A DNA stretch of 64,000 bases from Octopus sinensis (Eukaryota): NCBI RefSeq assembly GCF_006345805.1, contig NC_043004.1, forward strand, positions 74,214,001 to 74,278,000. The letters are read 5' to 3'. The notes under the pieces were generated by a model, which was not told the origin of the DNA, did not search any database, and saw nothing but the letters and a program-made list of their open reading frames with translations. Position numbers and translations under genes: made by a program. Shown here in pieces: positions 493 to 45,573 of this stretch. Every line of letters begins with the position of its first letter. The first letter of the stretch is position 1.

Positions 493-556
<64 letters not shown>

Positions 557-650: not shown

Positions 651-717
<67 letters not shown>

Positions 718-2151: not shown

Positions 2152-2198
<47 letters not shown>

Positions 2199-3479: not shown

Positions 3480-3527
3480 ATGGTGCAAGAACATTAATTA
3501 TTTTTGCTATCCTGCTGTTTGTAACAG
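3480..3527 (+). pseudogene. Orphan, frameshifted copy of gene A exon 1 (possibly an assembly artefact)
   Basis: Same sequence as 17919-17967 with one A missing (GTGCAAGA vs GTGCAAAGA), giving ATG GTG CAA GAA CAT TAA. GT donor retained; no matching exon 2 found before 14447. Confidence 0.6.
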
Positions 3528-13462: not shown

Positions 13463-14938
13463 AACTTAGATAAACTTAGATATGTTTCGACCAAAGATTG
13501 GTCCAGGCCATGTCTAACTTAATAGCACCACCTGCTAGGATTATTCGAATCCTGTTTAAGTCAAGTTTTGTTTAAGTCAAGTTTTGTTTAAGTCAAGTTT
13601 TGTTTAAGTCAAGTTTTGTTCAAGTAGTGAGTTCTTGTTGGGTGAGTTGTATCCAATTATGGGTGGCTTATCTGGTATTCTTTGAAGGAATCTATCCAGA
13701 CTCTGTTTAAAGTTGATGGGATCCTTTTCCTCTTTGATCTCTCTCGGGACAATGTTAAATAGGGCAGGGCCTGTTGAGGAAAGAAATTATGTTGTAGTGT
13801 ACATGTATGTTGTGATCTTGAATTGGGCAGGGGACGTATAGCCCGTGGTCCAAGTCTTGGATGGACCTTGAAGCTAATGTTTAGGTCGTTTGGGCAAAGT
13901 TGGCGGTATATTTTCCACATCGTACAAATGATGTACCGCTCACGGCGACGCTGTAGGGAGTAACGTTTCAAGGCTTTAAGGCGATCCCAATAATCGAGAG
14001 CAGCCATGCCTTCAATTCGTTTAGTGAGTGCCCTCTGGGGTGACTCAATTCTGGAGATGTTTTGTCTTGTGTGAGGAGACCACAGTGGGCAGCAGTATTC
14101 AAGGTGTAGCCGTACAAAGGAGGAAAAATGTGGTATGATGACACCTTGTTCTCTGGACCGGAAAGTTCTTAAGATCCAGGAACACATCCTACGAGCTATA
14201 TCGACCTTCTTGTTGATGTGTGCACTCCAACTGAGATCGTCATCAACAATTACACCCAGGTCTCTGATATTGTTAGAGGCTGTGAGCGGTTCCCCTGAAG
14301 GAAGAGAGTATGGCTGTTTTAGTGAGGAGTTTCTTCCAAAATGCATCAGCTCAAATTTTCCCTCGTTCAGTTGCATTTTGTTTCTGTCTGCCCATTGACT
14401 CACAGCATATAGATCAGACTGGAGTTGAGTTCGGTCTGCTTCTTCATTGACGATTTGCTGGAGCTTGGTGTCATCAGCGAATATTTTCACTTTGCAGTAA
14501 TGTACGACACTGGAAAGGTCGTTTATGTAGATTATGAAGAGTAGCGAACCCAAGACAGTCCTCTGGGGGACACCGCTGGTGACTTTTGCTGGGCTTGAGT
14601 GGACTCCATCAACTACAACATGTTGTGTTCTATTCGCCAGGAAATACTTGATCCAGTGTAGAACTTTTCCACGGATTCCAACATTTGCCAATTTTGAGAG
14701 TAGGATATGATGGTCTACCCTGTCGAACGCTTTACTGAAGTCAAGATATATGACATCAGAGTTCGAACCTGTTCCCAAGGCTTTGAGTACATCTTCAATG
14801 TGGTGTAAGAGCTGTGTTAGACAGTCCCTGCCACAGCGAAAGCCATGCTGATTTGCATTTAGGAGTTTCTGGGTCTCCAGGAAGTCAGCCATCCTTGATC
14901 TTAACACTCTTTCAAACACTTTGATGATGTGGGAGGTG

Positions 14939-14940
<2 letters not shown>
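13461..14940 (-). mobile_element. 5'-truncated CR1/L2-type LINE with open RT frame and intact 3' end
   Basis: The real part of ORF 13657-15009 carries RT motifs (NQHGFR, YLDFSKAFD, SGVPQ, FADDTK, LEYCCPLWSP). The 3' UTR has 4x a 16-bp repeat, a stem-loop and a (TATCTAAGTT)2 tail; (TA)n on both sides. Confidence 0.92.
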
Positions 14941-14998
<58 letters not shown>

Positions 14999-15092
14999 GC
15001 TCGTTTCAAGCGGTTGCAATTAATTTAACAATGCAATCATTACATGTGTATGTGTGTGTGTATTTATTTATTTTATATATGTATATATAGAG

Positions 15093-15159
<67 letters not shown>

Positions 15160-15204
15160 AGGAAGCGTAGCAATGTGGTAAGAAGTTTCCTTCGTAATCA
15201 CACG

Positions 15205-15470
15205 GCTCCGCGGTTGGGATTTTCTATCGGGTTCTCTTTTCTCTGGTGTTCCTCTCTTTATTTCTCGATCTTTCTCAAGCATCTTTGATGGAACGCCTCT
15301 AGTTTTCTCTTTTCACAATGCTCTTCCTTGTCCTTGTTGTCGTGAACAGCTGTTGAGAGGTACATTCTATTATAGATTTGTATCATTGTGTATAGACCGT
15401 TGTTGGTAAAGAACTATATACCACAGATTCTCCGGAATACTGTGCAGATCCCAGATCAAATTACCCAAAA
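15205..15470 (-). mobile_element. RTE-like LINE remnant (also at about 760-1010)
   Basis: Minus strand encodes CEKRKLEAFHQRCLRK, typical of the post-RT region of RTE; similar to 31480-31800. Confidence 0.5.
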
Positions 15471-15825
15471 CGGAAAAATAGCATTCAGCCAAAATAGCTT
15501 TAAACGTAGCAAAGTTTTACAATAATAGTTAATTACAAGTATACTTTTATTAGTTTCTATTTAATAGATTTAATGTTTCTATTAGTTACAGGTAAGTTTA
15601 CATTAATGAGTATGCAGTGTTTTTATTATTAACTTTTGATTTATGAAATGATGTATTTCACTCATAATTAGTTTATTATTCGTAAATTCAATTCAATTGT
15701 GTTTTCTTTTGGAGAGGAAATAAAGTTTTCATCTTTTATTATAGTAGTAACTATGGAAGACTGACGGGATGCATATTTGTAAGGACTTTAAGATTGCTGG
15801 TTATTTAGTATATAATTTAGTTATT

Positions 15826-16137
15826 ATATTGTTGTATTTAGGAATGGTCATTTTGCCAGTTTAGCCAATAAAAACACACGCACTATATATTTGGAGTTAC
15901 TTTGCTTCAGCGTTATTTATTTTTTTACTTTTTTTACATTAATCTTAATCTTATTTCGGCCAGAGTTCTTTCGGCACACACCTGTGACCTCATCAGTGGT
16001 CCTTTGCTGTCTTCTTTCTTATTTGTGTGTCTCTCCTTACTAACGGTCAGCCATTTTGTATTTTGTATTCCTATTGTATGTGTCTTCATTTGCGCATATT
16101 AAACTGGCAAAATGACCATTCCTAAATACAACAATAT
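15826..16137 (-). mobile_element. 312-bp element bounded by perfect 38-bp inverted repeats with a minimal hammerhead motif
   Basis: IRs at 15826-15863 and 16100-16137. Minus strand 16002-15958 reads GGACCA-CUGAUGA-GGUCACAGGUGUGUGCC-GAAA-GAAC-UC-UGGCC. Confidence 0.75.
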
Positions 16138-16588
16138 CTGTTTCAACACACGATTTCGCATAAAAATTCTTGAAAAGCAAATATATTAGTTATTATAGGT
16201 TTACTATTAATACTGATACAGATATACATAGATTTATGTATATCTTTGTTGTAGTTTAATTTTAAAGTTAGTGTTTAATCCTGCCTTTACTTAAAGGTTT
16301 GGTCGCTGTTTAGTTACATATTTAGGAGTTGGTTATTGGTTTACTTATTGAATTTTTTATTGATACTGTTGTACATTGGGTAAATGTGTTTGAAATTTGT
16401 TGTTTCTTTGGCATGTTTGTTCCCAAACAACACTTATTTTAGTGATGTTGACACCGCCGGATTGAATGGTACTGCCCAAGTCTCGAAACCATAAGGATGT
16501 CCGTGGGGCAGCTGATGATAGATTTATGTTGGATTGTTGGTATGATTGTTTTTGTATATGTGAAATCGTGTTATAACACATCCTGTTG

Positions 16589-16633
<45 letters not shown>

Positions 16634-17853
16634 GCTATGTATAAATATATTCTTTGTACACATTCATAGATGTATATATACTGAGAGAGATTTTGGGTAG
16701 CTTTGATCATGTTATTTCCAATGTTTGTTCAGAGAACGGAGCCTTATAACCTATGCTAGAAGTGATCTAGTACATCCAGTTTCAAAATGATTCGATTGTT
16801 TTCTAACGACGCGATCCTGCACAAACGCTCGCCGTATCAGACTGAAATATTTATTCTAATGGATAGCAAACGCCAAGTATGTGTGTGTATGTGTGTATGT
16901 ATTTTTTAAATCTTGTTGTTGCTGCTGTTTTTTTGCATCATTGTTGTTGGCGTTGTTTTTATTCAGTTTTATTTCTTTCACCTTTCTCGGGAATTCCCTT
17001 GGGAAATTTATGAGCAGCTTCATAGATAAATGTTTTAAATTTTCTTTGTTCTTTGAAAAGTAAAGTAATCAAAAAATTAAGAAAGATGGGATTTCTAGCA
17101 ACATTTTTCAGGAAGTTGTTTTTTTTAAACAAGTTTCTAAGCCTAAGAATGCACTACCGGAAAGTTAGAAGACAGGTCCACATTGAAATTTACTAGTCTG
17201 AAGTATTATTTTTTCATGACCCCTGAAAATCTACCGTAGACTTCCAATTTACTACATTGTATCCGTGGACCACTAAAAATCTTATATGGACCTGGGTTCA
17301 GAACCCTTGGTCTAAGCAATCTTACATTTTATTATTTTCAACGTTTGTTTATAGGACGGAGATCCACTTATAATAACAGATGCTAGAGGGAAGCAAGTAC
17401 ATCCTGCTGTAACATTATTCGATTGTTTTCTGACGACGCTATTGTGCACAAATGTGTGCTGTGTCATACGGAAATATTTCTTCCAGTAGATTTAAACATA
17501 TTTAAACTTGTATTTTAACTTCAAAATTTACAAGCTTAATATATTTCTCATTTTAAAGGCGACATATCTTCTACTGATCCATTCTCTGTATTGAAATATT
17601 TGGCAAGGCATAATGGTATTTCTATCAAGTGTTATAAAACGTGATGATTTCAAATGCCACCAATACAGCTTGCCTTAATGTAAACAATTAATGCTTCTAT
17701 AAACAAAAGCAAATGATTAAAAATAACCTCCAGATGTTCATATTTCTGATAATATTTGTTAGTCTTAATTTGCATCTTTTGTTTTCACAATTATTTTCGT
17801 GAGAAATTCCCATCCCGCACGTTTTGGAGTTCGTTTCAATTGTTCAGTAAACG

Positions 17854-17888
17854 CATAAGTATCGATGGTAAACCTTCCAGAATCAGTT
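17854..17888 (+). promoter_or_regulatory. Gene A core promoter: variant TATA (CATAAGTA) and Inr TCAGTT
   Basis: CATAAGTA at 17854-17861 lies 31 nt before the A of TCAGTT (17885), positionally equivalent to the TATAAATA/TCAGTT pair of gene B. Confidence 0.6.
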
Positions 17889-17918
17889 GTGGTGTTGCCA
17901 ATTGACCAAACGACAACC

Positions 17919-17967
17919 ATGGTGCAAAGAACATTAATTATTTTTGCTATCCTGCTGTTTGTAACAG
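17919..17967 (+). CDS. Gene A exon 1: signal peptide MVQRTLIIFAILLFVT(A)
   Basis: ATG, hydrophobic core, phase-1 G|GTAAG donor. 43/49 nt identical to gene B exon 1; 4 of the 6 changes are synonymous. Confidence 0.9.
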
Positions 17968-18479
17968 GTAAGAAAAAGTAAAATAGTATATATATTCAAC
18001 TTATCACTTCTCTTTCTTATTCATTTATTGATATTGTGTTGCAGTCATGAGAGAATGTTCATAACATTGTAGTATTTAGTTAAAGCTTTTTCTATCCCTT
18101 TCAATTGGGCCAGGGTTGATGTTAACTTCCAGACATCAGTGGGTTGATTATATACTGTCAAGTCAAATTTTATCCCTTTTCTTAAGTATGAAATCTTGTG
18201 CGTATATTATTAAATTATTATTTTGTTTGAGTCAGTAAAAGTCTCACAAAATCATTACCAGCAGTCCATCAGTTTGTGGTCAATTCTTGCTAAGATTAAC
18301 TTTGCCTTCTTAGTTTTCTGTTCGATAAAATTAGTTTCAGATCCAGAACGAAGATAGATTTCGTCGAGTTTACCCTTGCACCGATGTGTCTGGCCATGTA
18401 ATAAATTAATCATCAGTAGTTTGGCAGAGTCAGTGGAGTGTAGTTAATTCAAATCAGCTTTAATCTTTCTAGGTGAATT

Positions 18480-19380
18480 GCTGATTGTGCAAAGAAGACT
18501 TCAAATGTGACTAGTGGCGATTTTTCTTGAAAATGGACAGTGTTGCATCGTGATGTTATCAAGTACATGCAGAAAAAGTGTTTAGCGTCCAATGACATTC
18601 ATGCTGACATGGTTGCTACATTAGGGGATGAAGCTCCAGCTTTATCAACAATGCAAAAGTGGGAAGCTGAATTTAGGGGAAGGGAGATTCTTGAAAATTG
18701 ATTGTATTCACAACGTTGTGAAGAACGACAGGTGACTGACTATAAATCGAACAGCCAAAGATTTTACAGTATCCTGTGAGAGAGTAGAAACTATTCTGAA
18801 TAATACAATTGGCGTGCTCGGTGGATGCCATTCTCCTAACAACTGATCTAAAGCGCACCAGGCTGATCACATCATGAGAAAATCTGACATTTACACAGAT
18901 CCAGCTGCTTTCCTTAAACATTTCTATTCTATATTGAGTAATGGTTTCATCACTTTGAGCCAGAGGCAAAGAGACAATGCATGCAGTAGAAACAATCCCT
19001 CTTACCTCCTACAAAGAAGGCCAAGGTAGTTTCATCTGCATGGAAGATAATGGCGTCAGTGTTTCGAGATACGAAAGGTACTGCGTTGACTGACTATCTT
19101 CAAAAGAGGCACACCATCAAAGGAGAGTATTATTCGAAATTGATGGAGCAGTGACGAAAAACTACGAAGATCAAGTGTTCCAGAAAACTGACGGACGGGG
19201 TATTTTTCATCAGGACAATGCTCCAGCACACAAATACTGTGTTTAAATGGCTGCTGTACGTGACTGGGGGTTTGAACTAGTTGATCAACTCCCAATTCTC
19301 CTGACTTGGCCCTGTCAGACTATCATCCTCCACATCTAAAAACACTTCGCTGGGAACCAGTATTGCAGTGATGATATATG
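18480..19380 (+). mobile_element. Old mariner remnant (family 2) in gene A intron
   Basis: Remnants DIHADMVATLGDEAPALSTMQKW, HQDNAP and a degenerate PxSPDL-type motif. Homolog in gene B intron (37320-39540); partial copy at 4040-4346. Confidence 0.8.
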
Positions 19381-20876
19381 TTGTTGCTACTAGTTACTTC
19401 TGAAATCTGTTTTTCAAAGGACAGATATCAATTTACCTGTAATGAAGTAATTTTGTTATTAAAAAGGGTTACAATTAATGTATGCAGCATTTCATAGCTC
19501 TAGCGTCACTCTCACATAGTCAGCATATGAAATTTTCAGCCCTCCCTCGCAACAAATCAATGAAACTCACACATATGGACACGGCCCATACATATGTATA
19601 CATATACATTCATATGCATATTTGTGAAGGTGGGAGTGTGTGTATAATTTTGTCTTTCATAAATGCCTGCTGAAAAGTACCAATTACAAGTTAAACGATT
19701 ACTAATGGAAATCATTCCATCTACTTCTCTACACAGATGTTATTGTATTTCATAAAATACATGATTTTGGCGATGTTAGAAAACCCAAAGTGTTACCGTA
19801 TGATATTTAAAGAGACAAAAATAAGATTATAAAGCCACTTAGACAGCAATCAAACGTTGGGTAATCCTATAGATAATGCGGTTTTTTATACTTCTTTTAT
19901 TTTTCAAAATTAAGATAACCAAAGTTCTTTTATAATCTAAAATATACTCTGCTTAATTTTCTACAATACTTTTCCATCTGTCTGCTAGACCTGCAAAGCC
20001 CCTCTTCCAAAATTCACCTGTGCATGATGAAAAATACTCTTCCAGTACTGTTCTGATCTCGTCAGCTTATTTCTGTTACAAATCTATGGATAATTCTGTA
20101 CACATTCGATGCATGAGTTATTCAAATGGGATAAAGAGAATACAATTTAGTCAACTTTCTTAGTGTCACATTTAAATATCAAATGTTGAATAACAACTGT
20201 GTCAGGTCTATGACACACATTAATTTGTTTTATGATCAAGTATGAAAAGTCGAGTAATTAGAAAAAAAAGAAATAGGTATGTCCTAACTACAGTTAAAAT
20301 GTTTTTATTTATAAGTACGGATGATGAGAGAGAAAGAAGGTGAGTGCTGTGTATTATGTCTATGAAATTATTCCTTCCCCAAGCGGATATCATTGTATAT
20401 AAAATTTGTATCATATTCTCACCTCCATGTTTGAAATACACAGCAGTAATAACATCCAGGCAAGGGGATATATTATAATAAATACACAAGTGTATATACA
20501 GCAATTACAATAATAATCCATCGATGGAATTTATAAATATTTTATTGCATCGCTACGCACGTTTCCACAAATTACAAGTTTCTTAATAGCATAGACCATA
20601 TTCTTAGGATAAATGGACTGTAGTCCATGGGCAACCAGTGTCCTCGTTTACATCATGTTCATGCATTCAGTTCTTCGAGCAAAATAATATTAATACATGC
20701 TTAACGGATGTTTTTTTTACGAATTTTGACAAATGAGAAAGTAGACTGGGGTATGTGGGCAGTTTTATAGCAGACTGGTGGGTTGTATGTTCCATTTCAT
20801 TGCGTTTGAGCCTCAGGATGAAGTTAGCATATGTGTGTGTGTGTGTGTGTGTGTGTGTATGCATATATATATGTAC

Positions 20877-20938
<62 letters not shown>

Positions 20939-21054
20939 ATATATATATATATATGGATATGTATATATATATATATACATATATAAAGCAATACAATACG
21001 TGTGTCATAGAGCAAATATTCTATTGTGTGTGTGTGTGTGTATGCATATATATA

Positions 21055-21118
<64 letters not shown>

Positions 21119-21123
<5 letters not shown>

Positions 21124-22117
21124 TAGATAAAACTTAGATATGTTTCGACCAAAGATTGGTCCAGGCCATGTCTAACTTAATAGCACCACCTGATAGGATT
21201 ATTCGAATCCTGTTTAAGTCAAGTTTTGTTTAAGTCAAGTTTTGTTCAAGTAGTGAGTTCTTGTTGGGTGAGTTGTATCCAATTATGGGTGGCTTATCTG
21301 GTATTCTTTGAAGGAATCTATCCAGACTCTGTTTAAAGTTGATGGGATCCTTTTACTCTTTGATCTCCCTCGGGACAATGTTAAATAGGGCAGGGCCTGT
21401 TGAGGAAAAGAAATTATGTTGTTGTGTACATGTATGTTGTGATCTTGAATTTAACAGGGGACGTATAGCCCGTGGTCCAAGTCTTGGATGGACCTTGAAG
21501 CTAATGTTTAGGTCGTTTGGGCAAAGTTGGCGGTATATTTTCCACATCGTACAAATGATGTACCGCTCACGGCGACGCTGTAGGGAGTAAAGTTTCAAGG
21601 CTTTAAGGCGATCCCAATAATCGAGAGCAGCCATGCCTTCAATTTGTTTAGTGAGAGCCCTCTGGGGTGACTCAATTCTGGAGATGTTTTGTCTTGTGTG
21701 AGGAGACCACAGTGGGCAGCAGTATTCAAGGTGTGGCCGTACAAAGGAGGAAAAATGTGGTATGATGACACCTTGTTCTCTGGACCGGAAAGTTCTTAAG
21801 ATCCAGGAACACATCCTACGAGCTATATCGACCTTCTTGTTGATGTGTGCACTCCAACTGAGATCGTCATCAACAATTACACCCAGGTCTCTGATATTGT
21901 TAGAGGCTGCGAGCGGTTCCCCTGAAGGAAGAGAGTATGGTTGTTTTAGTGAGGAATTTCTTCCAAAATGCATCAGCTCAAATTTTCCCTCTTTCAGTTG
22001 CATTTTGTTTCTGTCTGCCCATTGACTCACAGCATATAGATCAGACTGGAGTTGAGTTCGGTCTGCTTCTTCATTGACGATTTGCTGGAACTTAGTGTCA
22101 TCAGCGAATATTTTCAC
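21119..22117 (-). mobile_element. Shorter 5'-truncated copy of the CR1/L2-type LINE in gene A intron
   Basis: Near-identical to 13461-14490; begins at VKIFADDTK, has 2 copies of the 16-bp UTR repeat and sits inside (TA)n. Confidence 0.92.
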
Positions 22118-22120
22118 TGA

Positions 22121-22210
<90 letters not shown>

Positions 22211-22680
22211 ATATGTATATATATATGTATACATATATAAAGGAATACAATACGTGTGTCATAGAGCAAATATTCTATCGTAGGACTTAAACTACGGCAT
22301 TCATCTCGAGAAAACATCTCTTAAAAACATATAGTATTAATAAAGTACTGAAGTATATCACTAGCAAGCGATAATAGCAGCTTCATAATGGCATAGTTAA
22401 ATACAAATGTCTTTCTTCTGCTTTAGATATATGTAGGAGCAAGTATCCTTAAGCAATCGCATGCTAAAATTAATTACTACTAATATACTGTGGGACACAC
22501 AAAAAAAAAAACTGGTTCAGGAGTATCCAGTGGTACAGACGTATCTCGTTGGGTGATAAATAAATAAATAATGTCGTTAAAATGACTGTTCCATAATACA
22601 ACTGTAGAGAGAAAAACAGCCAGACGGAGGAGAATTTTTCATATATACATATAGAAGATCCCAAAATAAAATTGCATAAG

Positions 22681-22722
<42 letters not shown>

Positions 22723-22726
22723 CGTT

Positions 22727-22763
<37 letters not shown>

Positions 22764-23640
22764 ATTATGTATGTATGTATAATGATATTATTGTTTATAA
22801 TAATAATATCAGTGGCTTAGCATGCGTTAAAACCGATAACTGTGAAAAGAAATTATCAATTAATAATTAAGTGTACTAACGTGCTAAATATAGCAGCCAA
22901 GGTAACCAAACCACAAATTTTTCACTAAAACACCAAGTTGAAAGCAAGTAAATGACAGAAAATCCTAAATCCCCGTACCAATGATGAAAATAATCGAAAA
23001 CTGAAAAAGGCATCGTGATTTCGAACGTTGAGAAAAATTCTTAGTTTATCTTTGTGGTTTGGTCATTTTGACTGCTATATTTATAAGCCAGTACTGTTTG
23101 TTAGTACCCTTAATTATTAATCGATATTTTTTTAACGCTATGGGCATTTTATGCATGTTAAGCCACTGATATTATCATAAATAACATTATCCTCATATAT
23201 ATTTAAATAATTTTTATTCACTTCTATCATTTTCTAAAATTTGCTTCGGCATTAAAAACGGTCATCGTACAAATTGGTGAGATGAATAATCTCTATAACC
23301 CTGTAGCAATAAGACTCATTGAAGATAAACTCATTGAAGTTCGATATGACGGTGATACGGGTATGTCTGGCTTCTTCAACTTTCGATTATTTTCCTCATT
23401 GGTAGAGGATTTTGGGATATTTATTCGTTTGCCCGCGTCCACTATTGCGTCTAAATGAAATTTTGTGGTTTGGTCATTTTGACTGCTATATTTAGCATGC
23501 TGGTACTGTTTGTCAGGACCCTCAAGTATTAATATATATATATATAAACCTATTTTCAAATTCACATAATGAATTAAATGTTTCACACACACGCATATAT
23601 ATATATATATGTATGTTTCTACATATTTATATGTATGTGC

Positions 23641-23700
<60 letters not shown>

Positions 23701-23702
<2 letters not shown>

Positions 23703-24420
23703 AGGAGTATCAGGTTCTGTTTGATTTCTTACATCTCATTTTTCAAGACAACTCGATATTTTGATGAACAGCTTAAAGTTGTAACTATCAGATAAATGTT
23801 AGCTGCCATGCAGGGCTAGAATATTGAAAAAGATTTATCTACATCATGATGAATTGTCCCGGGTAAAAAAAATGTCGATATCATGAGTGCTGCCAAATGC
23901 ACTGTGATCACTTTTAAGACGGAGACTACGAAACTGGCCGGTAGGAAGGGACAGAGCAGGCGTTCTGACTGTGCCTGCGCTTCGAAGTTCATCCATCTTC
24001 TTTGAACAGAATGTAAGTCTCAATTCAGATGGTATGAGAATCTTCTGGAGATTGGTCAAACCATAGCCGGAAAGGGTTACTGATTGATCACCATATATGT
24101 GACGGAAAGAAACAGAATAGTTGTCGGAGAATTTCTACGAGTGTACATGCCCTGATTTCTGGCCTCCTACTTCCTCCTATTGTCATCCTATGGATTACTG
24201 TATGTGGGGTGCGGTTTAAGAAGACACCAGCCACTGTGCCTGTAATACAAAGATCGTACTGGTGGTAAAGATCAAGGAGCTCGAAAGTGAAAGTGTTTGA
24301 AAATCTTTCCAAAGATATAGTGAGGGACGCACTACTAGGTTCCGGAAAAGACTCGACGCCGTGGTGGAAGATGTGGACGGCTACCTTGAGTCGACTGTTA
24401 TCTCCAGGCCATAAGCTAGT
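23701..24420 (+). mobile_element. Degenerate Tc1/mariner-superfamily remnant, homolog at 41215-42010
   Basis: Degenerate WPP.SPD..PMDY.MWG-like segment near 24150-24210; aligned to 41215-42010, both preceded by (GT)n and CAGG. Confidence 0.6.
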
Positions 24421-24619
24421 GGATGGTTTTTTTAATAATTTCATTTCTGGATAAGAGATTAAGTTTTCTTTTCCTTTTATGCAATCTTTTAAGTTTGCCC
24501 GCATAACCTTTGATGCATGCACACGCACACACATATACACACATACACATACAAATAAACACACACATAAACATAAATTCATACACACATACATATATAT
24601 TGTCATCGTTCATTTTATT

Positions 24620-25290
24620 TCAAGATTTCTTGCCAATAGAGGAAGAACCGGTTTCTAACCTAGATTCAAGGCTCCTTCATTGAAATTTCAACATTAACAA
24701 CAGGGTATTTCTGTTTGTATGTATGTATGTGTACAGATTTGTATGTTTTGCTTTATGTATGTATTCTCGTGCATATGGTTGCATATCTAGACATGCTCAT
24801 ATATATTTAAATGATAAACTTCCGGAAATTTTTACAGATTTTTACAGTTCCAGTGATGGATTGGATCTGTAGTCTTCGAATTAGTTTTTTCCATTCTGGT
24901 TTTGAGAAGCCAAATTTCTCAAGATTGGTATTTAGGCAGTGCGTTACATATCCCAGTGTGCCAATAATTGCAAGTATAAACCTGAACTTGTAATCTGGAT
25001 AGAGTAAGTGCACATTTCTCAATAGTTCAGTGTAGGTATTCTCTTTTTCACTGATCTTCAGCTTTATGTTAACATCCGCTGGGCAGCTAATTTCCACAAC
25101 TGTACACGGTTTCTCTTCTCTATCCCAAATCATAATATCAGGTCTATCGTGCTTACATTTTATTGAGCTCTTTGGTATATTTCACCAGTATTCCTTTTTA
25201 TTATGAGTGAATATAGCTTCTACCATACTGTGGGTTCTTATTTCTTTGTCCTCGGGGCCATCCCTCCGACGGATTTCATCATAGAGTGTC
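24620..25290 (-). mobile_element. 3' end of an R4/Dong-like LINE (restriction-like endonuclease)
   Basis: HDRPDIMIWDREEKPCTVVEISCPADVN..IIGTLGYV..ITGTVKICKNF (ORF 24807-25133), a PD..E-type RLE motif. Confidence 0.8.
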
Positions 25291-25457
25291 CTAGCTACAA
25301 CGTCGTGTCTCATCGGTAGATAATACCGTGATGACATTTTCAGACAACTGCTTATGATGTGGGTGACTTCTATGAATGTGTGTATTTATGTATATGCATT
25401 TGTAGATATAAATTTGACAAAAATATTTTTCCTTTCCTTTTATATTAAGAATATATA

Positions 25458-25860
25458 GGCGCAGGAGTGGCTGTGTGGTAAGTAGCTTGTTTACCAACCA
25501 CATGGTTCCGGGTTCAGTCTCACTGTGTGGCACCTTGGGCAAGTGTCTTCTACTATAGCCTCGGACCGACCAAAGCCTTTTGAGTGGATTTGGTGGACGG
25601 AAACTGAAAGAAGCCAGTCGTATATATGTATATATATGTATATATGTGTGTGCGTATATGTTTGAGTTTGTCCTCCTAGCATTGTTTGACAACCGATGCT
25701 GGTGTGTTTATGTCCCCGTAACTCAGCGGTTCGGCAAAAGAGACCGATAGAATAAGTACTGGGCTTACAAAGAATAAGTCCCGGGGTCGAGTTGCTCGAT
25801 TAAAGGCGATGCTCCAGCATGGCCGCAGTCAAATGACTGAAACAGTAAAAGAGAGTAAAG
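25458..25860 (+). mobile_element. Full-length tRNA-derived SINE
   Basis: GGCGCAGGAGTGGCTGTGTGGTAAG..GGTTCAGTC head, central (TA/TG) tract, tail CCAGCATGGCCGCAGTCAAATGACTGAAAC. Fragments at 46080-46160 and 62821-62970. Confidence 0.85.
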
Positions 25861-26036
25861 AGAGATATGAAAATAGATTTCAAATTTAATTTTGTTTCTA
25901 AAAATATGCAAAATAACACAAATTTCAGGTATGAATATTTGACCAAGAGACTTTTCTTCGTTTTCCACTTTCCAAACACGTGTTATAATGTTTACCTGAT
26001 AACATGTTCGAATAAAATGCTAAAGGCCGCGAAAAA

Positions 26037-26357
26037 TGCTTCCATATGATCTCCGTACGTTGACCTCTTCGGTTTGGCTGCAATTTTTGAAATTTTAAAA
26101 TTAAGTGAAAATATTCAAATTTGGTGTATTGATGTAATTTTTGACGCTGCATTGCAAGGTTTAATTCCTTTGATCCAGAAAAATTTTGAAAATAGTTACA
26201 GAGGTTTGAATTGTGGTAATTTATATTCAGTCGACAAAAAAGAAAGCATTTGGGAGTTGTCGTTTTGTGCGTGACTGCGATCGTAAGACGACTGAGCTAT
26301 AATGTGAACGTTGCAGCCAAACCGAAGAGGTCAACGTACGGAGATCATATGGAAGCA
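26037..26357. repeat. Perfect 47-bp inverted repeat with 227-bp spacer
   Basis: 26037-26083 is the exact reverse complement of 26311-26357. Confidence 0.9.
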
Positions 26358-26954
26358 CATGTTTTAAGTATTTAATAAGCGAAAATGATTTTAAGAAACC
26401 GTGTAAGCAGCATATTTTGTAGGTTTTCACAATCAGTATGCATTTAATTCGAAAAAGGATTAAACAACACATTATTTTTAAGAGTAGAAAAAGATGGGCA
26501 CAAGCTGGAAAACAGCACAAAAATCACGTGGTCTTTTGTAATCACTTTTCCAGCGTTATATATATATCTATGGGTTTCGATCGGCTAAAACAACTCAAAA
26601 TTTGCAATCCTTTAGAGCTATTAGTTCTTAATTTATTGACTTATGACGAAAGTTCATCTCATGTCAATAATGAGCATACTTAACAACACCAAACTTGAAA
26701 TCAATTGGAACAAAATTGCAGAAATTGAAAAACCGGCAGCCAAACAAAAAAGGACCACGGGCATTTCCATACATTCAGATCTTTGTGAATTAGCTTTTCT
26801 AAAACAAGTTTTCATATAATTTAGATAGATTTCATATAGCTTTTTAATGCAATAAGAACTTCTTGACTGAATAAATTTTATTTTTTTAAATGTGTGTGTA
26901 TTTGTGTATAATACACTTTCCTGTACTCATTTCGATTATTTTCTTACTTTACAG

Positions 26955-27124
26955 CAGTGCAGTCTTGCTATTGGAATTACTGTGGTGGTCACTGGTATAA
27001 TCCATATACTCAGAGGTGTTGTGGAACAACGATAATCCCCTGGTGGAGAGCACATTGTTGTCGTGGATGGTTGCATGGGTGGCCTTGGTGGAATAGGCAT
27101 TGGCATTGGTATCTCGTATGTTGA
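26955..27124 (+). CDS. Gene A exon 2: Trp/His/Cys-rich mature peptide (A)VQSCYWNYCGGHWYNPYTQRCCGTTIIPWWRAHCCRGWLHGWPWWNRHWHWYLVC*
   Basis: Pyrimidine tract and TTTACAG acceptor, phase matches exon 1, same CAGTGCAGTCT start as gene B exon 2. 3' UTR and AATAAA (27440) are homologous to gene B. Confidence 0.88.
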
Positions 27125-27651
27125 GATAAATCCCAGCAAGATACTAATTCTGTAAGCGACCAAGGATGAAATATGACAAATTGCTCGATCCTCTCTCAAT
27201 GATCCAATCACTTATATAATAACTTTCGTTATATAGATTACTAATGTTCCCATGCGATAAATGATGCTATTATTCATATAGTTTATATAATGCCGCTGAC
27301 ACCGACATTTCAAACCTTTTTCGTCTATAACATAAAACTTAACAAAATATTTGTCTTCATACAAATATTTTGTTATCTTTCTTTCGTCAGTCATAGATAA
27401 TTTGTTTAAATTGAGAAAGCATCATCGCACACAGAATTTAATAAAAAACTAAAATAAAATTTGGTGTATTCTAGTTTCTTTTTCGTTTTTAATAAGACAA
27501 AGTCTAAATGAATATAAGGACTCCCAATTTATATGAGTTGCAATCAAATTACACTTTGACATCAACATAGATTTGAAACAGTCTCTTCAAGATCCTAAAG
27601 TCAACAAAAATTTGCCATTATTGCAAGGTTTATCATATAGTTTTAAATGTA

Positions 27652-27708
<57 letters not shown>

Positions 27709-27711
27709 ACA

Positions 27712-28993
27712 TACGAGGGGCGTTCGATAAGTAATGCCCCTGACCCACTTCCCATAGCAGTAGAGAAACGAAACTTGGCACAGTTATTAGTCTTTTTCTA
27801 CATAGGAACCACCCAGAGTTACGCATTTCTCCCATCGTTTGATGCAGCTTTGGAGACCGTTTTATTAGAAGACCCCAGCTTGGTCATCCGACCACGACGT
27901 GACTTCAGAAATCAAGGCTGCATCATCTGGGAAACGCTTTTCCTTTCAAAAACAACTTCATGGCTGGGAAGAGGTGAAAATCAGAAGGTGCAAGGTCAGG
28001 AGAGTAGGGGGATGCGGAAGGAGTTCATAACCGCACGCCCGTGCTTCTGATCTGGCGACAAGCGAGTTATGGACCGGAGCGTTATCCTGCAGAAGGAGGA
28101 TATCTTTGCTGATCTTGCCCCGCCTCTTGATTTTTATAGCTTCTCTTAATTTCCTCAAAAGTGAAGCACAATAGGCTCCTGTAATTGTGGTACCCTTTGC
28201 CAGGAAATCTGTCATCACTACTCCGTCCTGGTCCCTAAAGACTGTGAGCATGACCTTACCAGCGGAGGGCTGCACCCTTGCCTTCTTTGGAGAAGGTGAA
28301 TCACGGTGCTTCCACTGCATTGACTGGGCTTTGGTCTCTGGATCATAGTGATGGACCCAGGTTTTATCCTGTGTAATCAGTCTTTTGAAAAATTTTGACT
28401 CATCTTCTTGGCACATCTCCAAATTCATCCTCGAGCACTCGACGCGTTCTTGCTTCTGGAAAGGTGTGAGCAACCTGGGAATCCATCTGGCAGACACCTT
28501 TTGCATATGAAAATGGTCATGAATGATAGTTTCCACAGACCCGGTACTAATCTTGACCTCATGGGCTATTTGGCGAATAGTTATGCGTCGATCTTCCAAA
28601 ATGGCAGCCTCAACCTGACGGACAGATGCCTCATCGACGGCAGATCTGGGAGCTGTTTCCACAGAGTTCCGACCATGTTTGAATTCACGATGCCAGCGTT
28701 TTACAAGGTCATATGATGGGGCATCATCACCATAAGTTACTTTCATTTCATCAAAAGTCTCCCGTGGTGTGCGTCCTTTCAAATACAAAAACCGGATCAC
28801 TGCTCGACACTCAACAGGCTCCATTTCACACTTGACTCAGTTCAAACACCTGTAAATCAGAAACCACAATTAGTTCAAAGATGTTATTTGCCACTTCATC
28901 TATAGAGATATAAATAATTGCACATGCAAAATTTCAGCTAGATCAAACAACTGCAAGTGGGTCTGGGGAATTACTTATTGAACGTCCCTCGTA
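27712..28993 (-). mobile_element. Full-length mariner element copy 2 (longest ORF, 288 aa; D,D34D after restoring one frameshift)
   Basis: TIRs with terminal TA; ORF 27958-28824. One C is missing in the PHPP C-run, and a TAA TAA follows downstream. Confidence 0.95.
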
Positions 28994-34589: not shown

Positions 34590-35450
34590 AGCTATTCAGG
34601 GCTCAATGAAAATGTACTGGTGGTTACGAGCACGGTGGCCCATCTAACCTAAACATGGTTTGGGAGGAAGCTATCCCTGACAGGAAGGGTGGAGGTGGCA
34701 AATGTGTTCATCGCATCTGTCATCATTTACCTGGGTTCGTTGCAAGCGGAGTGCCGTCAAGCACCTTCGCTTCTCTCCTAGACGGCCAATACGAGCAGTG
34801 GGGGTTCCACCTCGTCCTTCTATAGAGGGTTCGTTACAAGCACATGTGATGACGTCCTACGGGAGACTCTGGGTTTCGATGACAGTCAACTTGCCGGTCT
34901 GTTCCGGCGGACTTTTGGACGACGCCTATCAATAACTATCGGAAACCCCTGGCCTGGCAGTGCTACCGAGGAGCATTACACGTTCGAGATAAGCTTTTTA
35001 GACCCAGTAGTTCTACCATGCCGACATGTCCGAGATGCGAGCAGAGACGTGAAACTGTTTTGCACGCGATCGTACAGTGCCCGCAGATATCAGAACTAAG
35101 AGTTTATGTCGAATACCTGCTACCACGCATAGCAAGAGTACAACTATCTACCGAGTCCCTTATCAAGATCGATCCACCGCCTTCTCTTAACAAGGAAAGG
35201 TTGGTAACTTTTCTCTGCATTGTGGATGTCGCAAAAGAGGTCGTATGGTTGACATGCGTGAAAGGAATCACTACATGTATCTTTCTCTGCAGCCTTAGTT
35301 TGGTAAACTATTTTAAATACCAACTAAAAAGGAAAATAAGGATGGAGAGAAAGTACCTCCTACCGCGGAAGTTTGCAGTAAGATAGAAGAGTGTGGAGCG
35401 TTTGATGAGCATGAATGATCTAACTTGAGCGCAAATATCTATAGACAAAT
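34590..35450 (+). mobile_element. Tx1/L1-like LINE 3' remnant with CCHC zinc knuckle
   Basis: ORF 35018-35386 reads CPRC..ETVLHAIVQC..KEVVW. Confidence 0.7.
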
Positions 35451-35631: not shown

Positions 35632-36788
35632 TACACATAGATGCACATATACTCTGATAGAGATTGGGTAGCGTTCAACGTTTTATTTTCATTGTTTGTA
35701 GAACGGAGGCTTATAACAGACGCTAGAAGTGAGCTAGTACATCCTGTAGCAATATTATTCGATTAACGACGCTATGGAGCACAAATGCATGCCGTATCAG
35801 ACTGAAATATTTGTTCCAGTAGATAGTAAACGATATGTCTGTGTGTATGTGTGTTTGCTTTTTTAAAATTTATTTTTTGTTGTTGCTACTGTTCTCGGCA
35901 TCCTTGTTGTTGACGTTGTTTTTGCTAAGTATTATGCCCAGCTTCACATATAAATGTTATGTTTTTTTTTTATTAATTATCTTTTCATTGACCTTGTTTT
36001 GGAAAGTAAATTAGGAAAAACAGGTTTTCTAGCAACATTTTTCAAGACATTTTTCTTAAACAAGTTTCTAAGCCTGAGAGTGCAGCATTGGAAATTTAAA
36101 AGACAAGGTCCACATTGGAAACAACTGTTATAAAGCACAATTTTTTATGAACCTGAAAAATTTCCCTGAACTCCCAATTTACTATATTGCATCCGGTGAC
36201 CCCTAAAAATATTTTTATATATACTCCGGCTGAAAATTCCTGTTCTGAGCAGTCTTACATTTTATTATCTTAAATATTTGTTTATAGAACGGAGGACATT
36301 TAACTGATGCTAAAAGTGAGCTAATACATCCTGTACCAACATTATTTGATTGTTTTCTAACGACGCTTTTGTACATAAATCAATAAAATATCATATTGAA
36401 AGATTTGTACCAGTAGATAGTGAACGTTTAAACATGTTTGAATTTGCATTTTGATTTCAAAATTTACAAAGTAAGACATTATTCATTTTAAATGTGAGAT
36501 GTCGTCTACTGACCCATTCTCTGTATGGAAAAATTTGTCAAGGCATAATGGTATTGCTATCAGGTGTCACAAAACATGATTATTTCAAACGCCACCAATC
36601 AAGTTTGCTTTAATGAAAACAATTAATACTTCCACAAACAAAAGCATATGTTTAAAAATAACCTTCAGACATTCGTATTTCGGATGATATTTGTCAGTCT
36701 TAATTTGCAACTTTTGTTTTCTTAATTATTTTCGTGAGATATTCCCATCACACTCGTTTTGCAATTCGTTTCAATTGTTCACCAAATG

Positions 36789-36824
36789 TATAAATACCGA
36801 CGCTAAAGCCTTCCCGGATCAGTT
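36789..36824 (+). promoter_or_regulatory. Gene B core promoter: TATAAATA and Inr TCAGTT
   Basis: TATAAATA at 36789-36796 lies 32 nt before the A of TCAGTT (36821), which is 24 nt before the ATG. Confidence 0.75.
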
Positions 36825-36844: not shown

Positions 36845-36893
36845 ATGATGCAACGAACATTAATCATCTTCGCTCTCCTGCTGTTTGTAACAG
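36845..36893 (+). CDS. Gene B exon 1: signal peptide MMQRTLIIFALLLFVT(A)
   Basis: ATG, hydrophobic core, phase-1 G|GTAAG donor; paralog of 17919-17967. Confidence 0.9.
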
Positions 36894-37319: not shown

Positions 37320-39540
37320 AAGTCTGACTAAAGAAGACTTCAAAAGTAATTTTTTGGCCACTTTCCTTGAAAAAGGAAGACGTTTCGCATCGTGGTTTTA
37401 TAAACTAAATGCAGAAAAATGGTTTATCCCACAATGACATTCATGCTAACATGGTTGCTACATGTGTGGATTACTCTCTAGCTTCATCAACGGTGCAAAA
37501 GTGAGTAGCTGAATTTAGGAGGGGAAGGGTGTGACTTGAAGATAACCAAAGGTCCAGACGTCCTGCAACTACGACGCCAAAAAAAACATTGACCATGTAT
37601 GTATACTACGTGTTGCAGGATGACAGGTGACTGACTATAAATCAAACAGCTAATAGTTTTATTCCGTGAGAGAGTTGAGTATATTCTGCACAATAACCAT
37701 GGCATGCTCGGTGCATGCTAGTTTTATCCCGGTGGTCATATTACGATGAAATCTAACATTTAGACACATCCAGTTGGCTTCCATAAATGTTTCCTAACCT
37801 ATGTTAGGTGTTGGCTTCATCACTTTGAACCAGAGACAAAGAGACAATCCATGCAAAAGGAACACCCATGCTCACATGCCACAAAGAAGGCCAAGGTTGT
37901 TTCGTCTGCAGAGAAGATAGTCGTCTCGGATTTTGAGAATAGAAAAGGTACTGCGTTTATTGACTATCTTGAAAAGGGTCTCACTGTCAATGGAGAGTAT
38001 TACGTGATCTTGCTGCAGAAGTTACGAAACGCTACCAAGATCAAACGTCCAGGAAAACTGACGAAAAGGAGAATAATCTTTTCATCGGAACAATGCTCCA
38101 GCACACAAGTCCTTCGTTTCAATGGCTGTTGAGCATGACTGTGGCTTTGAACTACGAGGGGCGTTCAATAAGTAATGCCCCTGACCCACTTCCCATAGCA
38201 GTAGAGCAACGAAACTTGGCACAGTTATTAGTCTTTTTCTACATAGCAACCACCCAGAGATACACATTTCTCCCATTGTTTGATGCAGCTCTGGAGACCG
38301 TTTTTGTAGAAGACCCCAGCTTGGTCCTCCAACCTGAACGTGACTTCAGAAATCAAGGCTGCATCATCTGGGAAACGCTTTGCTTTCAAAAACAACTTCA
38401 TGATTGGGAAGAGGTGAAAATCAGAGGGTGCAAGGTCAGGAAAGTAGGGGGATGGGGGAGGAGTTCATAGCCATACGCCTGTGCTTCTGATATGGCGACA
38501 AGCGAGTTGTGGACCGGAGCGTTGTCCTGCAGGAGGAGGATGTCTTTGCTGATCTTGCCCCACCTCTTGTTTTTGATAGCTTCTCTTAATTTCCTCAAAA
38601 GTGAAGCATAATAGGCTCCTGCAATTGTGGTACCCTTTGCCAAGAAATCTGTCATCACTACTCCGTCCTGGTCCCAGAAGACTGTGAGCATGACCTTGCC
38701 AGCGGAGGGCTGCACCCATGCCTTCTTTGGAGGGGGTGAGTCACGGTGCTTCCACTGCATTGACTGGGCTTTGGTCTCTGGATCATCGTGATGGACCCAG
38801 GTTTCATCCTGTGTAATCAGTCTTTTGAAAGATTTTGACTCATCTTCTTGGCACATCTCCAAATTCACCCTCGAGCACTCGACGCGTTCTTGCTTCTGGA
38901 AAGGCGTGAGCAACCTGGGAATCAATCTGGCAGACACCTTTTGCATATGCAAATGGTCATGAATGATAGTTTCCACAGACCCGGTACTAATCTTGACCTC
39001 ATGGGCTATTAGCGAATAATTATGCGTCGATCTTCCAAAATGGCAGCCTCAACTTGACGGACAGATGCCTCATCAATGGCAGAAGGGGCAACCAGATCTG
39101 GGAGCTGTTTCCACAGAGTTCCGACCATGTTTGAATTCACGATGCCAGCGTTTTACAAGGTCATATGATGGGGCATCATCACCATAAGTTACTTTCATTT
39201 CATCAAAAGTCTCCCGTGGTGTGCGTCCTTTCAAATACAAAAACCGGATCACTGCTCGACACTCAACAGGCTCCATTTCACACTTGACTCGGTTCAAACA
39301 CCTGTAAATCAGAAACCACAATTAATTCAGAGCTGTAATTTGCCACTTACTCTATAGAGATATAAATGATTGCACATGCAAAATTTCCAACAACTGCAAG
39401 TGGGTCAGAGGCATTACTTATTGAACGTCCCTCGTACTTGATCGCCTCCCAAATCTCATTGACTTGGCCCTATCTGACTATCATCTTTTCCCCGAGTAAA
39501 ATCTACTTTGCTGGAAATTAGTATTGCAGTGATGATGACG
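37320..39540 (+). mobile_element. Old mariner remnant (family 2) split by the copy-3 insertion
   Basis: Homolog of 18480-19380, interrupted at GAAC-TA (38153) and resuming at 39437. Confidence 0.8.
38153..39436 (-). mobile_element. Full-length mariner element copy 3, nested in an older mariner
   Basis: TIRs with TA duplication; ORF fragments 38398-38976 (QDETW, QDNAP) and 39073-39321. Confidence 0.95.
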
Positions 39541-42600: not shown

Positions 42601-43429
42601 TTGAGTCGATTGTTATCTCCCAGCCACATTTCACTTGATATCTTTTTTAATACTTTCATTTGTGAATGAGAGACTGTTTCCTTTTCAATTTATGCAAACT
42701 GTTAAGTTAACACGAATACCATTACATGCGCGCGAGCTCACACACACATATGCATACATACATACATACATACATACATACATACATACATACATACATA
42801 CATACATACATACATACATACATACATACATACTTGCGTTTTCTTATCTCATCGGTATTGCAGAGCAGTTTTCGTCGGTGGTGGTTTTGTTAGATTCAGG
42901 CATAATCGTGTTCGCGAAATTCCACGTAGTATAAGAAATATCTTTGAAATCCACTTTGGATAATGCTACGTTGGAATAATCCTACGTTCTCTTATAATGG
43001 TAGAAATAAACCAGTTACCGATTTATGCTGAGAGTCGGCATAAATGTTTAAAGGAACGTTCAAAAATTATATTTTTAAACGGCTATCTACACCTACACGT
43101 TTGAACTCAGAACATAACGGCAGACGAAATACGGTTACGCATTTCGCCCGGGGTGCTAACGTTTCTGCCAGCTCGCGCCTAAATACAATTTGTAAGTGAA
43201 ACAGTAAAACTCTGCAAGATTTTGCACAAGTATAAACTGTAAATTTTTTTTATCTACAAGGCGGTGCTCCAGCATGGCCACAGTCACATGACTGAAACAA
43301 ATAAAAGAATGCAAAAGACAGAGCGTTGTATCTTTATTAGAAATCACCTCTTCCTTCAGAGGAAAATTTTAAATGATAAAATAGAGAAGATACGTACATA
43401 CATACATAAATTCGTACATACCTAAGTAT

Positions 43430-43454
43430 ACATGTATGTATGTATGTATGTATG

Positions 43455-43488
<34 letters not shown>

Positions 43489-43546
43489 TGTATGTATGTA
43501 TGTATGTATGTATGTATGTATGTATGTATGTATGTATGTATGTATG

Positions 43547-43580
<34 letters not shown>

Positions 43581-43582
43581 TG

Positions 43583-43616
<34 letters not shown>

Positions 43617-43871
43617 TGTATGAATGAATGTATGTATGTATGAATGCATGTATGTATGTATGTATGTATGTATGTATGCATATATGTATTATGCATGTAT
43701 GTATGTATGTATGTATGTGTGTGTGTATGTATGTTTGTATGTATATATGTTTGTATGTATGTATGTGTGTACGTATGTATATATGTATGTTTGTGTGTAT
43801 GTATGTATGTGTGTATGTATGTGTGTATGTATATATGTATGTATATATGTATGTATATGTATATATGTATG

Positions 43872-43902
<31 letters not shown>

Positions 43903-43907
43903 GTATG

Positions 43908-43939
<32 letters not shown>

Positions 43940-43947
43940 TGTATGTA
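43430..43947. repeat. Long compound (TATG)n microsatellite
   Basis: About 520 bp of TATG/TGTA variants; further tracts at 7562-7640, 42750-42835 and 44880-45110. Confidence 0.95.
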
Positions 43948-45331: not shown

Positions 45332-45573
45332 CAGTGCAGTCTTTTCATCCATGGTATTACTGTTATCCTGGAGGTTGGTATAATTCACTGACTCACCTCT
45401 GTTGCAGCAACGGCATCGTGGTTAAAGGTCCGAATAATGCCTGCTGTGGAACAACCCCTTTTATTTACCCAACTCAAAGATGTTGTGGATCGCAAGTATA
45501 CCCAGTGGGTAATTTGAATCACTGTTGTTATGATGTTCATTGGCCTGGTTATATCCATTATTACTTATGTTAA
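45332..45573 (+). CDS. Gene B exon 2: galaxin-like di-cysteine repeat peptide (A)VQSFHPWYYCYPGGWYNSLTHLCCSNGIVVKGPNNACCGTTPFIYPTQRCCGSQVYPVGNLNHCCYDVHWPGYIHYYLC*
   Basis: TTTACAG acceptor, phase matches exon 1. Four CC pairs spaced by 11-12 residues; AATAAA at 45858. Confidence 0.9.

Follow-up and report, generated by a model that had tools for sequence, protein, structure and literature searches.

A tryptophan-rich candidate mini-galaxin gene of Octopus sinensis and its octopus relatives

Galaxins were first defined from the coral skeletal matrix, and a role in mollusc shell formation has been proposed for them (PMC12773714). The galaxins of the bobtail squid Euprymna scolopes are cationic epithelial proteins found in the symbiotic organs, and single-repeat peptides from them (EsGal1R3 and EsGal2R4) inhibit bacteria at 50-300 uM (PMC12773714). 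Cephalopod innate immunity is poorly charted, and galaxins have been tied to antimicrobial function only recently and only in the bobtail squid. Here we describe gene A, a putative two-exon gene for a very short, tryptophan-rich galaxin-like peptide, in a 64,000-nt stretch of the Octopus sinensis genome (NC_043004.1, positions 74,214,001 to 74,278,000, forward strand; hereafter the window), and compare it with its octopus relatives and with described peptides. Coordinates are those of the window unless another locus is named.

Gene A and its predicted peptide

Judged by its splice signals and its relatives, 26955-27124 (+) is the last exon of a real two-exon gene for a small Cys-rich peptide. 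A polypyrimidine tract and acceptor, ttcttactttacag/CA (26940-26954), stand directly before the frame of this exon, which encodes AVQS, a 52-residue mature peptide and a TGA stop (27122-27124). The whole precursor has 72 amino acids, the first 16 of which (MVQRTLIIFAILLFVT) are encoded at 17919-17966. The spliced product equals the uncharacterised 72-residue O. vulgaris protein CAI9727409.1 (P0001) at 71 of 72 residues, and this protein was the one relative found in a word-indexed search of 5.8 billion proteins (98% identity over the 56-residue query). The sequence of peptide A is thus not new, having been deposited already as an O. vulgaris "hypothetical predicted protein". The parts of gene A were placed as follows.

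17760..17918, +, promoter and 5' untranslated region (5'UTR), conserved with genes B and C (see below); TATA-like GCATAAGTA at 17853-17861
17919..17967, +, coding part of exon 1: MVQRTLIIFAILLFVT and the first base of Ala17; donor G/GTAAGA
17968..26954, +, phase 1 intron of 8,987 nt, with long interspersed element (LINE) fragments and microsatellites; last ~55 nt conserved with gene C
26955..27124, +, coding part of exon 2: AVQS, mature peptide, stop
27125..27460, +, probable 3'UTR (3' end approximate); AATAAA at 27440-27445; 70-73% identity to the 3'UTRs of B and C, including the AATTTAATAAA block

The window is collinear with one locus in O. vulgaris (L001; OX597821.1, ~118.4 Mb) and with one in an O. 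sinensis assembly (L002; CM016866.1, ~74.7 Mb). Exon 1 agrees at 48 of 48 nt with that of the gene modelled in O. vulgaris, for which the annotators called the correct 8.3-kb intron. Those models were produced with EVM, which combined Iso-Seq and RNA-seq data with protein alignments and with ab initio predictions (PMC10700109). Exon 2 is identical at 170 of 170 nt in the O. sinensis locus and at 169 of 170 in O. vulgaris (a Tyr-to-His change at 27110). Among the variable sites between 26559 and 27672, seven split the window from the other two genomes, while O. vulgaris alone differs at six and O. sinensis alone at three. From these sites we conclude that the window represents a third haplotype or lineage within the O. 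vulgaris complex. No orthologue of A was found outside the O. vulgaris complex.

The precursor begins with the n-region MVQR and a hydrophobic core of 11 residues, and the residue at -1 is small, which suggests a signal peptide of ~20 amino acids cleaved after AVQS. At this assumed site the small -1 residue (S/A/S) is kept across the paralogues, and the alternative cleavage after VTA is impossible in the octopus paralogue XP_036361078.1 (P0073). No propeptide or dibasic processing site was seen in the sequence of A. Translated from this site, the mature peptide reads CYWNYCGGHWYNPYTQRCCGTTIIPWWRAHCCRGWLHGWPWWNRHWHWYLVC (52 amino acids) and contains ten Trp, seven Cys, five Tyr, five Gly, five His and four Arg, with no Asp, Glu or Lys. 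Trp makes up 19% of the residues, and the calculated net charge is +4.1 at pH 7 and +7.8 at pH 5.5 (isoelectric point 8.8, mass 6.7 kDa). Aromaticity is 0.29, compared with 0.20-0.21 in B and C. An earlier note, made from the DNA letters, had described a 52-residue peptide with 10 Trp, 5 His, 4 Arg, 7 Cys and no acidic residue, and its description is exact to the base.

In this AT-rich DNA (37% GC) with its many microsatellites, open reading frames (ORFs) of 55-70 codons occur often, and the length of A's frame alone is not significant. This abundance is what would favour a chance frame in non-coding DNA. The coding status of exon 2 is based instead on its splice to an exon 1 that matches an annotated protein and on the same structure in gene B. 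Set against a chance frame are the acceptor, the phase-matched exon 1, the paralogous structure, the annotated orthologue and the family Cys framework, to which may be added that the antisense ORF (26936-27211, -) had no Pfam match; such a frame is almost certainly not the explanation. The antisense ORF was itself rejected as a candidate, being a Pro-rich mirror of the TGG codons. Tandem Repeats Finder detected no tandem repeat in exon 2, so the Trp richness of A is not a simple-repeat artefact, and with the splice and homology evidence this ruled out a microsatellite artefact as well as a chance frame. That gene A encodes a real secreted mini-galaxin gene product is, from these sequence comparisons, very probable.

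Galaxin membership and the octopus family

Galaxin-like proteins are recognised by CC pairs repeated at a regular spacing of about 11-14 residues. Peptide A has two such pairs 11 residues apart (CC-GTTIIPWWRAH-CC) with flanking single Cys, which is the minimum repeat number. At the Pfam gathering thresholds (28 bits for PF24748, Galaxin_repeat; 25 bits for PF14653, IGFL), the products of genes B (33.6 bits) and C (37.1 bits) and the O. bimaculoides protein P0004 (50.1 bits) pass PF24748, while P0080 (22.2 bits) and precursor A fail. Membership of A in the IGFL family was rejected: its score of 16.8 bits is below the threshold, and the same weak match occurs in other galaxin-like proteins, so it reflects the CC pattern that they share. 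The earlier note had proposed a galaxin-type scaffold, and this held up, since B, C and P0004 pass PF24748 and A shares their promoter, exon 1, intron phase and UTR. As far as homology can tell, A is a derived galaxin-like member by descent despite failing Pfam.

A profile of A and B gave 169 matches against 1.84 billion representative proteins, mostly long multi-repeat galaxin-like proteins (most of 200-1,200 amino acids). Matches at the signal-peptide end with a similar signal sequence were confined to octopus proteins, a handful of short ones. Among the best 150 family representatives the Trp content of A is an extreme outlier: A has 10 Trp per 52 amino acids, P0004 has 6 and the other 148 have no more than 4, with a median Trp fraction of 0.6%. 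The relatives considered here are the following, together with gene C, which lies outside the window.

36845..36893, +, gene B exon 1: MMQRTLIIFALLLFVT and G; canonical TATA GTATAAATA at 36788-36796
45332..45573, +, gene B exon 2 ('peptide B' of the earlier note): 76-residue mature peptide with four CC repeats and 10 Cys
3480..3527, +, copy0, a dead duplicate of exon 1 with a frameshift (1-nt deletion after ATGGTGC)
O. bimaculoides A0A0L8FU16 (P0004), 94 amino acids, short family member with the same signal peptide
O. bimaculoides A0A0L8G8N6 (P0080), 85 amino acids, short family member with the same signal peptide
O. bimaculoides A0A0L8FGL5 (P0003), orthologue of B with five CC repeats
O. sinensis XP_036361078.1 (P0073) and its O. 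vulgaris orthologue P0151, on the same chromosome, 36 Mb off in O. sinensis and further in O. vulgaris
O. vulgaris CAI9727408.1 (P0016), chimeric model containing gene C

Gene B lies downstream of A on the same strand and has the same two-exon structure; its protein is 85% identical to the galaxin-like O. sinensis protein XP_036361356.1. Gene C was located in O. vulgaris, also on the same strand, where its locus (L005) starts ~45 kb, and the gene of P0016 ~55 kb, downstream of A's stop. Its exon 1 is at L005:10001-10049, and its exon 2 (L005:14228-14467) encodes AVQSYYPWYRCYNEHYNPYTHYCCNNVVHPKTNSLNACCNGITPYNAQFDGCCAGTLIPWWKNTCCVRHPWWNFEYLTC; the intact 95-residue precursor is unannotated. The orthologue of gene C is P0004, at 59% identity, and this pairing led us to reject P0004 as the orthologue of A.

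The members have a common framework: a signal peptide, one Cys, n CC pairs and a terminal Cys (an even count), and a W-P aromatic/His tail ending in L/F/I-x-C. Across A, copy0, B and C, the aligned promoter and exon 1 have a mean column identity of 86%. Between A and B, parts of the intron are 82% identical and the 3'UTRs ~70-73% identical, and the mature coding region beyond its first 12 nt could not be aligned by blastn. Of the B orthologues, P0003 has five CC repeats and the window four, which means that the number varies between species; the translated intron is ~94% identical between them and the mature peptide region about half identical. These comparisons point to a tandem mini-galaxin family, so far found only in octopus. 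Its members keep the promoter, the signal exon, the phase 1 intron and the 3'UTR, and their mature regions change fast by gain and loss of CC repeats and by replacements. No paper on such an octopus family was found; octopus galaxins were met only in passing mentions, and a search by accession number returned nothing.

Mini-galaxins are affected by annotation errors in three public octopus gene sets. CAI9727408.1 (350 amino acids, 'Seven cysteines N-terminal domain-containing protein', OX597821.1) joins exon 1 and part of exon 2 of gene C to exons more than 22 kb downstream. The model of P0003, compared with 45229-45570, begins within the intron; its first 33 residues (MCGYLTKRLF...) are translated intron with ~94% identity to the window, and the true signal exon is missing.

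The surroundings of the genes are 37% GC and rich in microsatellites, with mariner and LINE copies. A direct tandem segmental duplication (1-4346 and 14447-18777; period 14,446 bp, 97.8% identity) holds copy0 in its upstream copy, and a tblastn search for further exon 2 copies within the window did not find a partner exon 2 for copy0. A Mos1/mariner-type transposon of ~1.29 kb is present in three copies with ~93% mutual identity (9442-10734, 27711-28993 and 38153-39437). The second lies just downstream of gene A and carries a 288-codon ORF (27958-28824, -) with the Pfam domains Transposase_1 and HTH_48. Retroelement fragments were seen at 13660-15024 (-), 21356-22258 (-), 34883-35383 (+) and 44369-44826 (+), as RVT_1 ORFs, a zf-RVT piece and fragments of C2H2 zinc-finger ORFs; those at 21356-22258 and 44369-44826 are within the long introns of A and B, respectively. 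Long compound (TGTA/TATG/TG)n microsatellites occupy 43385-45120, 22597-22867, 23496-23792, 48732-49375 and many other places. One array of ~1.7 kb, which lies directly before exon 2 in B's intron, explains part of the difference in intron spacing between A and B. An Rfam scan of the whole window returned no family.

Divergence, selection and predicted structure

Gene A is, from the features that the two share, the sister of gene C. These are the final ~55 nt of the intron, the beginning of the 3'UTR and the motifs YNPYT..CC, IPWW plus a basic residue..CC, PWWN and YL.C. Relative to C, A is without 29 residues in frame, which correspond to CC repeats 2 and 3, and its tail has gained the small in-frame insertions GWL, GW and WHW, which add four Trp. 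Compared with C, A has inherited five of its ten Trp and gained the other five. The acidic residues of C are absent from A, with two Glu-to-His changes of two bases each, and two Arg have been added. Net charge at pH 7 is +4.1 in A, compared with +1.0 in C and +1.1 in B.

The odd count of seven Cys, to which the earlier note had drawn attention, is due to a derived Cys at mature residue 1. This residue is Tyr in C and Phe in B, and the change (TAC/TTT to TGC) is one of a single base; in the other short members that were compared, the number of Cys is even (8-12). The same note had read the segment TQRCCGTT as a fusion of two repeats of peptide B. At the DNA level there is a repeat junction, the 5' half matching B repeat 3 (16/18) and the 3' half B repeat 2 (11/11). 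A simple deletion from a B-like ancestor was rejected, as the order of the halves (repeat 3, then 2) does not fit it. A C-like ancestor that lost repeats 2 and 3 would account for the junction more simply, so the junction stands and its derivation from B does not.

Alignment of A and C over 48 codons gave a nonsynonymous divergence (dN) of 0.40, a synonymous divergence (dS) of ~1.0 (few sites, saturated) and an omega of ~0.4. All well-separated indels are in frame, the six scaffold Cys are kept and the stop is at the homologous position, from which it appears that the ORF has been maintained since the split from C. This dN is close to the distance in non-coding DNA (~0.34), and the non-scaffold residues would therefore change no more slowly than expected under neutrality.

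Gene B was compared with its counterpart in O. sinensis (L002:19021-19263). Of the 243 nt of its exon 2, 16 differ, giving 12 amino-acid changes; there are 14.5 nonsynonymous and 1.5 synonymous differences (dN/dS ~2.6), and every Cys is kept. The N:S ratio alone is not significant (P ~0.13-0.32). The exon is 6.6% diverged and its flanks 3.7% (Fisher P = 0.037). Flank divergence is strikingly uneven along the window, ~3.7% at B versus ~1% around A, 18 kb away; it may stem from old haplotypes, from selection (balancing or positive) or from noise that microsatellites bring into the alignment.

These patterns bear on two other readings of gene A. One is that it encodes a different kind of secreted effector, for instance a venom peptide of the saliva or a rapidly evolving peptide for recognition in reproduction or chemosensation. 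The joining of a conserved exon for the signal peptide to a hypervariable one with the Cys framework, the tandem cluster with its change in repeat number and the dN/dS above 1 in B would agree with it, a combination that typifies families of toxins and of reproductive peptides. We regard it as very improbable, given that no similarity to a known toxin family was found in Pfam or PDB, that propeptide and dibasic sites are lacking in A and that the related squid proteins are epithelial immune factors. The other reading is a structural or matrix peptide of chitin, cuticle or mineral (for example of sucker lining, beak/radula, egg coat or statolith), which would bind through stacked Trp, Tyr and His. 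In being rich in aromatic residues and knit together by Cys, A is like small peptides that bind carbohydrates. The coral skeletal origin and the proposed shell role of galaxins (PMC12773714) agree with a matrix function, and so does the W-P aromatic/His tail in all paralogues (HWP, WWWP, HHWP, LWP), which suggests that the paralogues have a binding surface in common and not a weapon peculiar to one lineage. Matrix galaxins are long, with many repeats, and rapid, probably positively selected divergence of the mature region behind a conserved signal is more typical of defence, venom and recognition peptides, so that we find a matrix role improbable.

AlphaFold2 (AF2), run with a nine-sequence family alignment, gave precursor A a mean confidence (pLDDT) of 67.6, with a signal helix at residues 3-21 and strands at 24-26, 29-31, 36-39 and 42-45 (block-mean pLDDT ~71-79). 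Run on the mature peptide alone, it was uninformative (pLDDT 52.9). A PDB sequence search of A found nothing significant; the best match with an antimicrobial name, MiAMP1 (PDB 1c01), was set aside at E = 0.54. Going by the family pattern, the six scaffold Cys would form a galaxin-type ladder, C6-C18, C19-C31 and C32-C52 in mature numbering, holding two short beta-hairpins. Cys1 would stay unpaired, free for a dimer or an adduct, and the Trp/His/Arg tail would be exposed and flexible.

The tail segment W39-W48 (27080-27109), WPWWNRHWHW, has the spacing W(i), W(i+2), N(i+4), W(i+7), W(i+9), and this pattern is specific to A, having been created by the tail insertions. Such spacing is said to give cross-strand Trp pairs in the designed tryptophan-zipper (trpzip) beta-hairpins, reportedly of Cochran et al. 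in 2001. The likeness is one of Trp/Asn spacing, in pattern only, and the turn in A would be N-R, not N-G. A trpzip-like hairpin in the tail of A is a candidate that the AF2 model neither supports nor refutes.

Proposed function and comparison with known systems

Taken as a whole, the best explanation is that peptide A is the product of a two-exon mini-galaxin gene and, by analogy with the squid galaxins, would act outside the cell as a host-defence or surface-binding peptide; we put the probability of this explanation at roughly 0.55. Defence or surface binding is preferred as the best single reading because of the shift towards Trp, Arg and His, the loss of acidic residues and the way in which the cluster evolves, like that of effectors. 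With its aromatic, cationic tail, A would enter the membrane interface of microbes or stack on polysaccharide, in analogy to the antimicrobial repeat peptides of EsGal1 and EsGal2. Peptide A has the composition of Trp-rich cationic antimicrobial peptides (high Trp, net positive charge, no Asp or Glu). No homology to a known peptide of this type was found: in Pfam only Galaxin_repeat and IGFL were matched, both below threshold, and the sequence search of PDB gave nothing significant. Its only His cluster is H45-W-H47 (H-W-H-W-H in O. vulgaris), and no recognised metal-binding motif was seen, neither an ATCUN N-terminus (it begins C-Y-W, or V-Q-S if cut after Ala17) nor HExxH. An antimicrobial function specifically, which the squid analogy would suggest, is a tentative proposal, and the metal-binding and self-assembling roles that the earlier note had also put forward would be candidates as well. 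Doubtful is the far-reaching version of the proposal, a novel, fast-diversifying octopus mini-galaxin effector family in which A was neofunctionalised into a potent membrane- or chitin-targeting defence peptide of a structural type unseen in other animals, with a disulfide-stapled hairpin core, a trpzip-like, pH-switchable cationic His tail and a free N-terminal Cys through which it would dimerise or be anchored covalently.

Several results weigh against a defence or surface-binding peptide, and most of them would also suit a young duplicate that is drifting or decaying, weakly expressed or silent, with its odd Cys, lost repeats and Trp tail as neutral accidents. Precursor A is below the PF24748 threshold, at 16.0 bits (E = 0.012). 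The TATA box is degraded in A (GCATAAGTA, in the window and in O. vulgaris) compared with the canonical GTATAAATA of B and C. That of the dead copy0 also reads GCATAAGTA, and this suggests altered or weaker transcription of gene A. The dead exon 1 copy nearby marks a region of ongoing duplication and decay. The O. sinensis assembly gene set has no gene call over the identical exon. The O. vulgaris model suggests transcript support and is not proof of expression, since EVM also takes ab initio predictions. Constraint on exon A was tested among the three close octopus genomes and none was measurable, a test without power at one substitution in 170 nt against ~1% in the flanks (P = 0.49). The Trp-rich tail (55-72) has no confident AF2 structure (pLDDT <50), and Foldseek gave no match in PDB. 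The squid analogy itself points to weak activity, as the EsGal peptides act only at 50-300 uM.

Half of the repeats are gone, one Cys is unpaired and the A-C dN (0.40) approximates the non-coding distance (~0.34), which adds to the case for decay. Four observations argue the other way. In each of the three genomes the frame is open throughout, although A and C are set apart by several separate indels, every one of them in frame; the six scaffold Cys and the stop position are kept, with an omega of ~0.4; both acidic residues of C that align with A have become His by two-base changes, in a consistent cationic and aromatic direction; and the O. vulgaris annotators called the gene with its 8.3-kb intron. 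Many promoters also work without a TATA box. Decay is, on balance, unlikely, and a host-defence or surface-binding peptide is retained as the preferred reading.

In octopuses this locus reveals a tandem set of very short galaxin-derived genes that evolve like effectors, with a conserved signal exon, gain and loss of repeats and dN/dS above 1 in one member. Were the preferred reading true, repeat loss and small insertions would have turned a matrix-type repeat protein into a cationic peptide. If expressed and active, A would be a compact, disulfide-stabilised Trp/His/Arg scaffold of interest for antimicrobial-peptide research.

Among cephalopod galaxins, function has been studied only in the squid proteins EsGal1 and EsGal2 (Heath-Heckman et al. 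2014; PMC12773714). They are secreted, as A is predicted to be, and like A they have tandem CC repeats and a net positive charge. Unlike A, they are long, with up to seven repeats and charges of +5 to +21.5, and their activity was shown for excised single repeats. The whole product of gene A consists of two CC units and a 20-residue Trp/His/Arg tail, a tail that is not described in the squid paper, and the likeness is one of analogy.

Closer to A are gene C, A0A0L8FU16 and gene B/XP_036361356.1, all sharing with A the predicted signal peptide, two exons joined in phase 1, the pattern C + n x CC + C and a W-P aromatic/His tail ending in L-x-C; C and A0A0L8FU16 also share IPWW..CC and the Trp-rich tail with A. 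These octopus paralogues differ from A in having four CC pairs, 10 Cys, 3-6 Trp and a charge of about +1, and in passing PF24748. The coral galaxin of Galaxea fascicularis, a protein of the skeletal organic matrix and the founder of PF24748, is secreted, as A is predicted to be, and like A has regularly spaced CC repeats. In contrast to A, it is a long multi-repeat protein of an aragonite skeleton without a Trp-rich tail, and its similarity to A is weak (16 bits).

Outside the galaxins, indolicidin and tritrpticin are 13-residue linear, Trp-rich cationic peptides, and puroindolines display a Trp-rich basic loop on a disulfide-rich scaffold. All three are similar to A in their very high Trp content and in being basic without acidic residues, by analogy and not by sequence homology. 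Unlike theirs, the basic character of A is partly due to His and would hence depend on pH.

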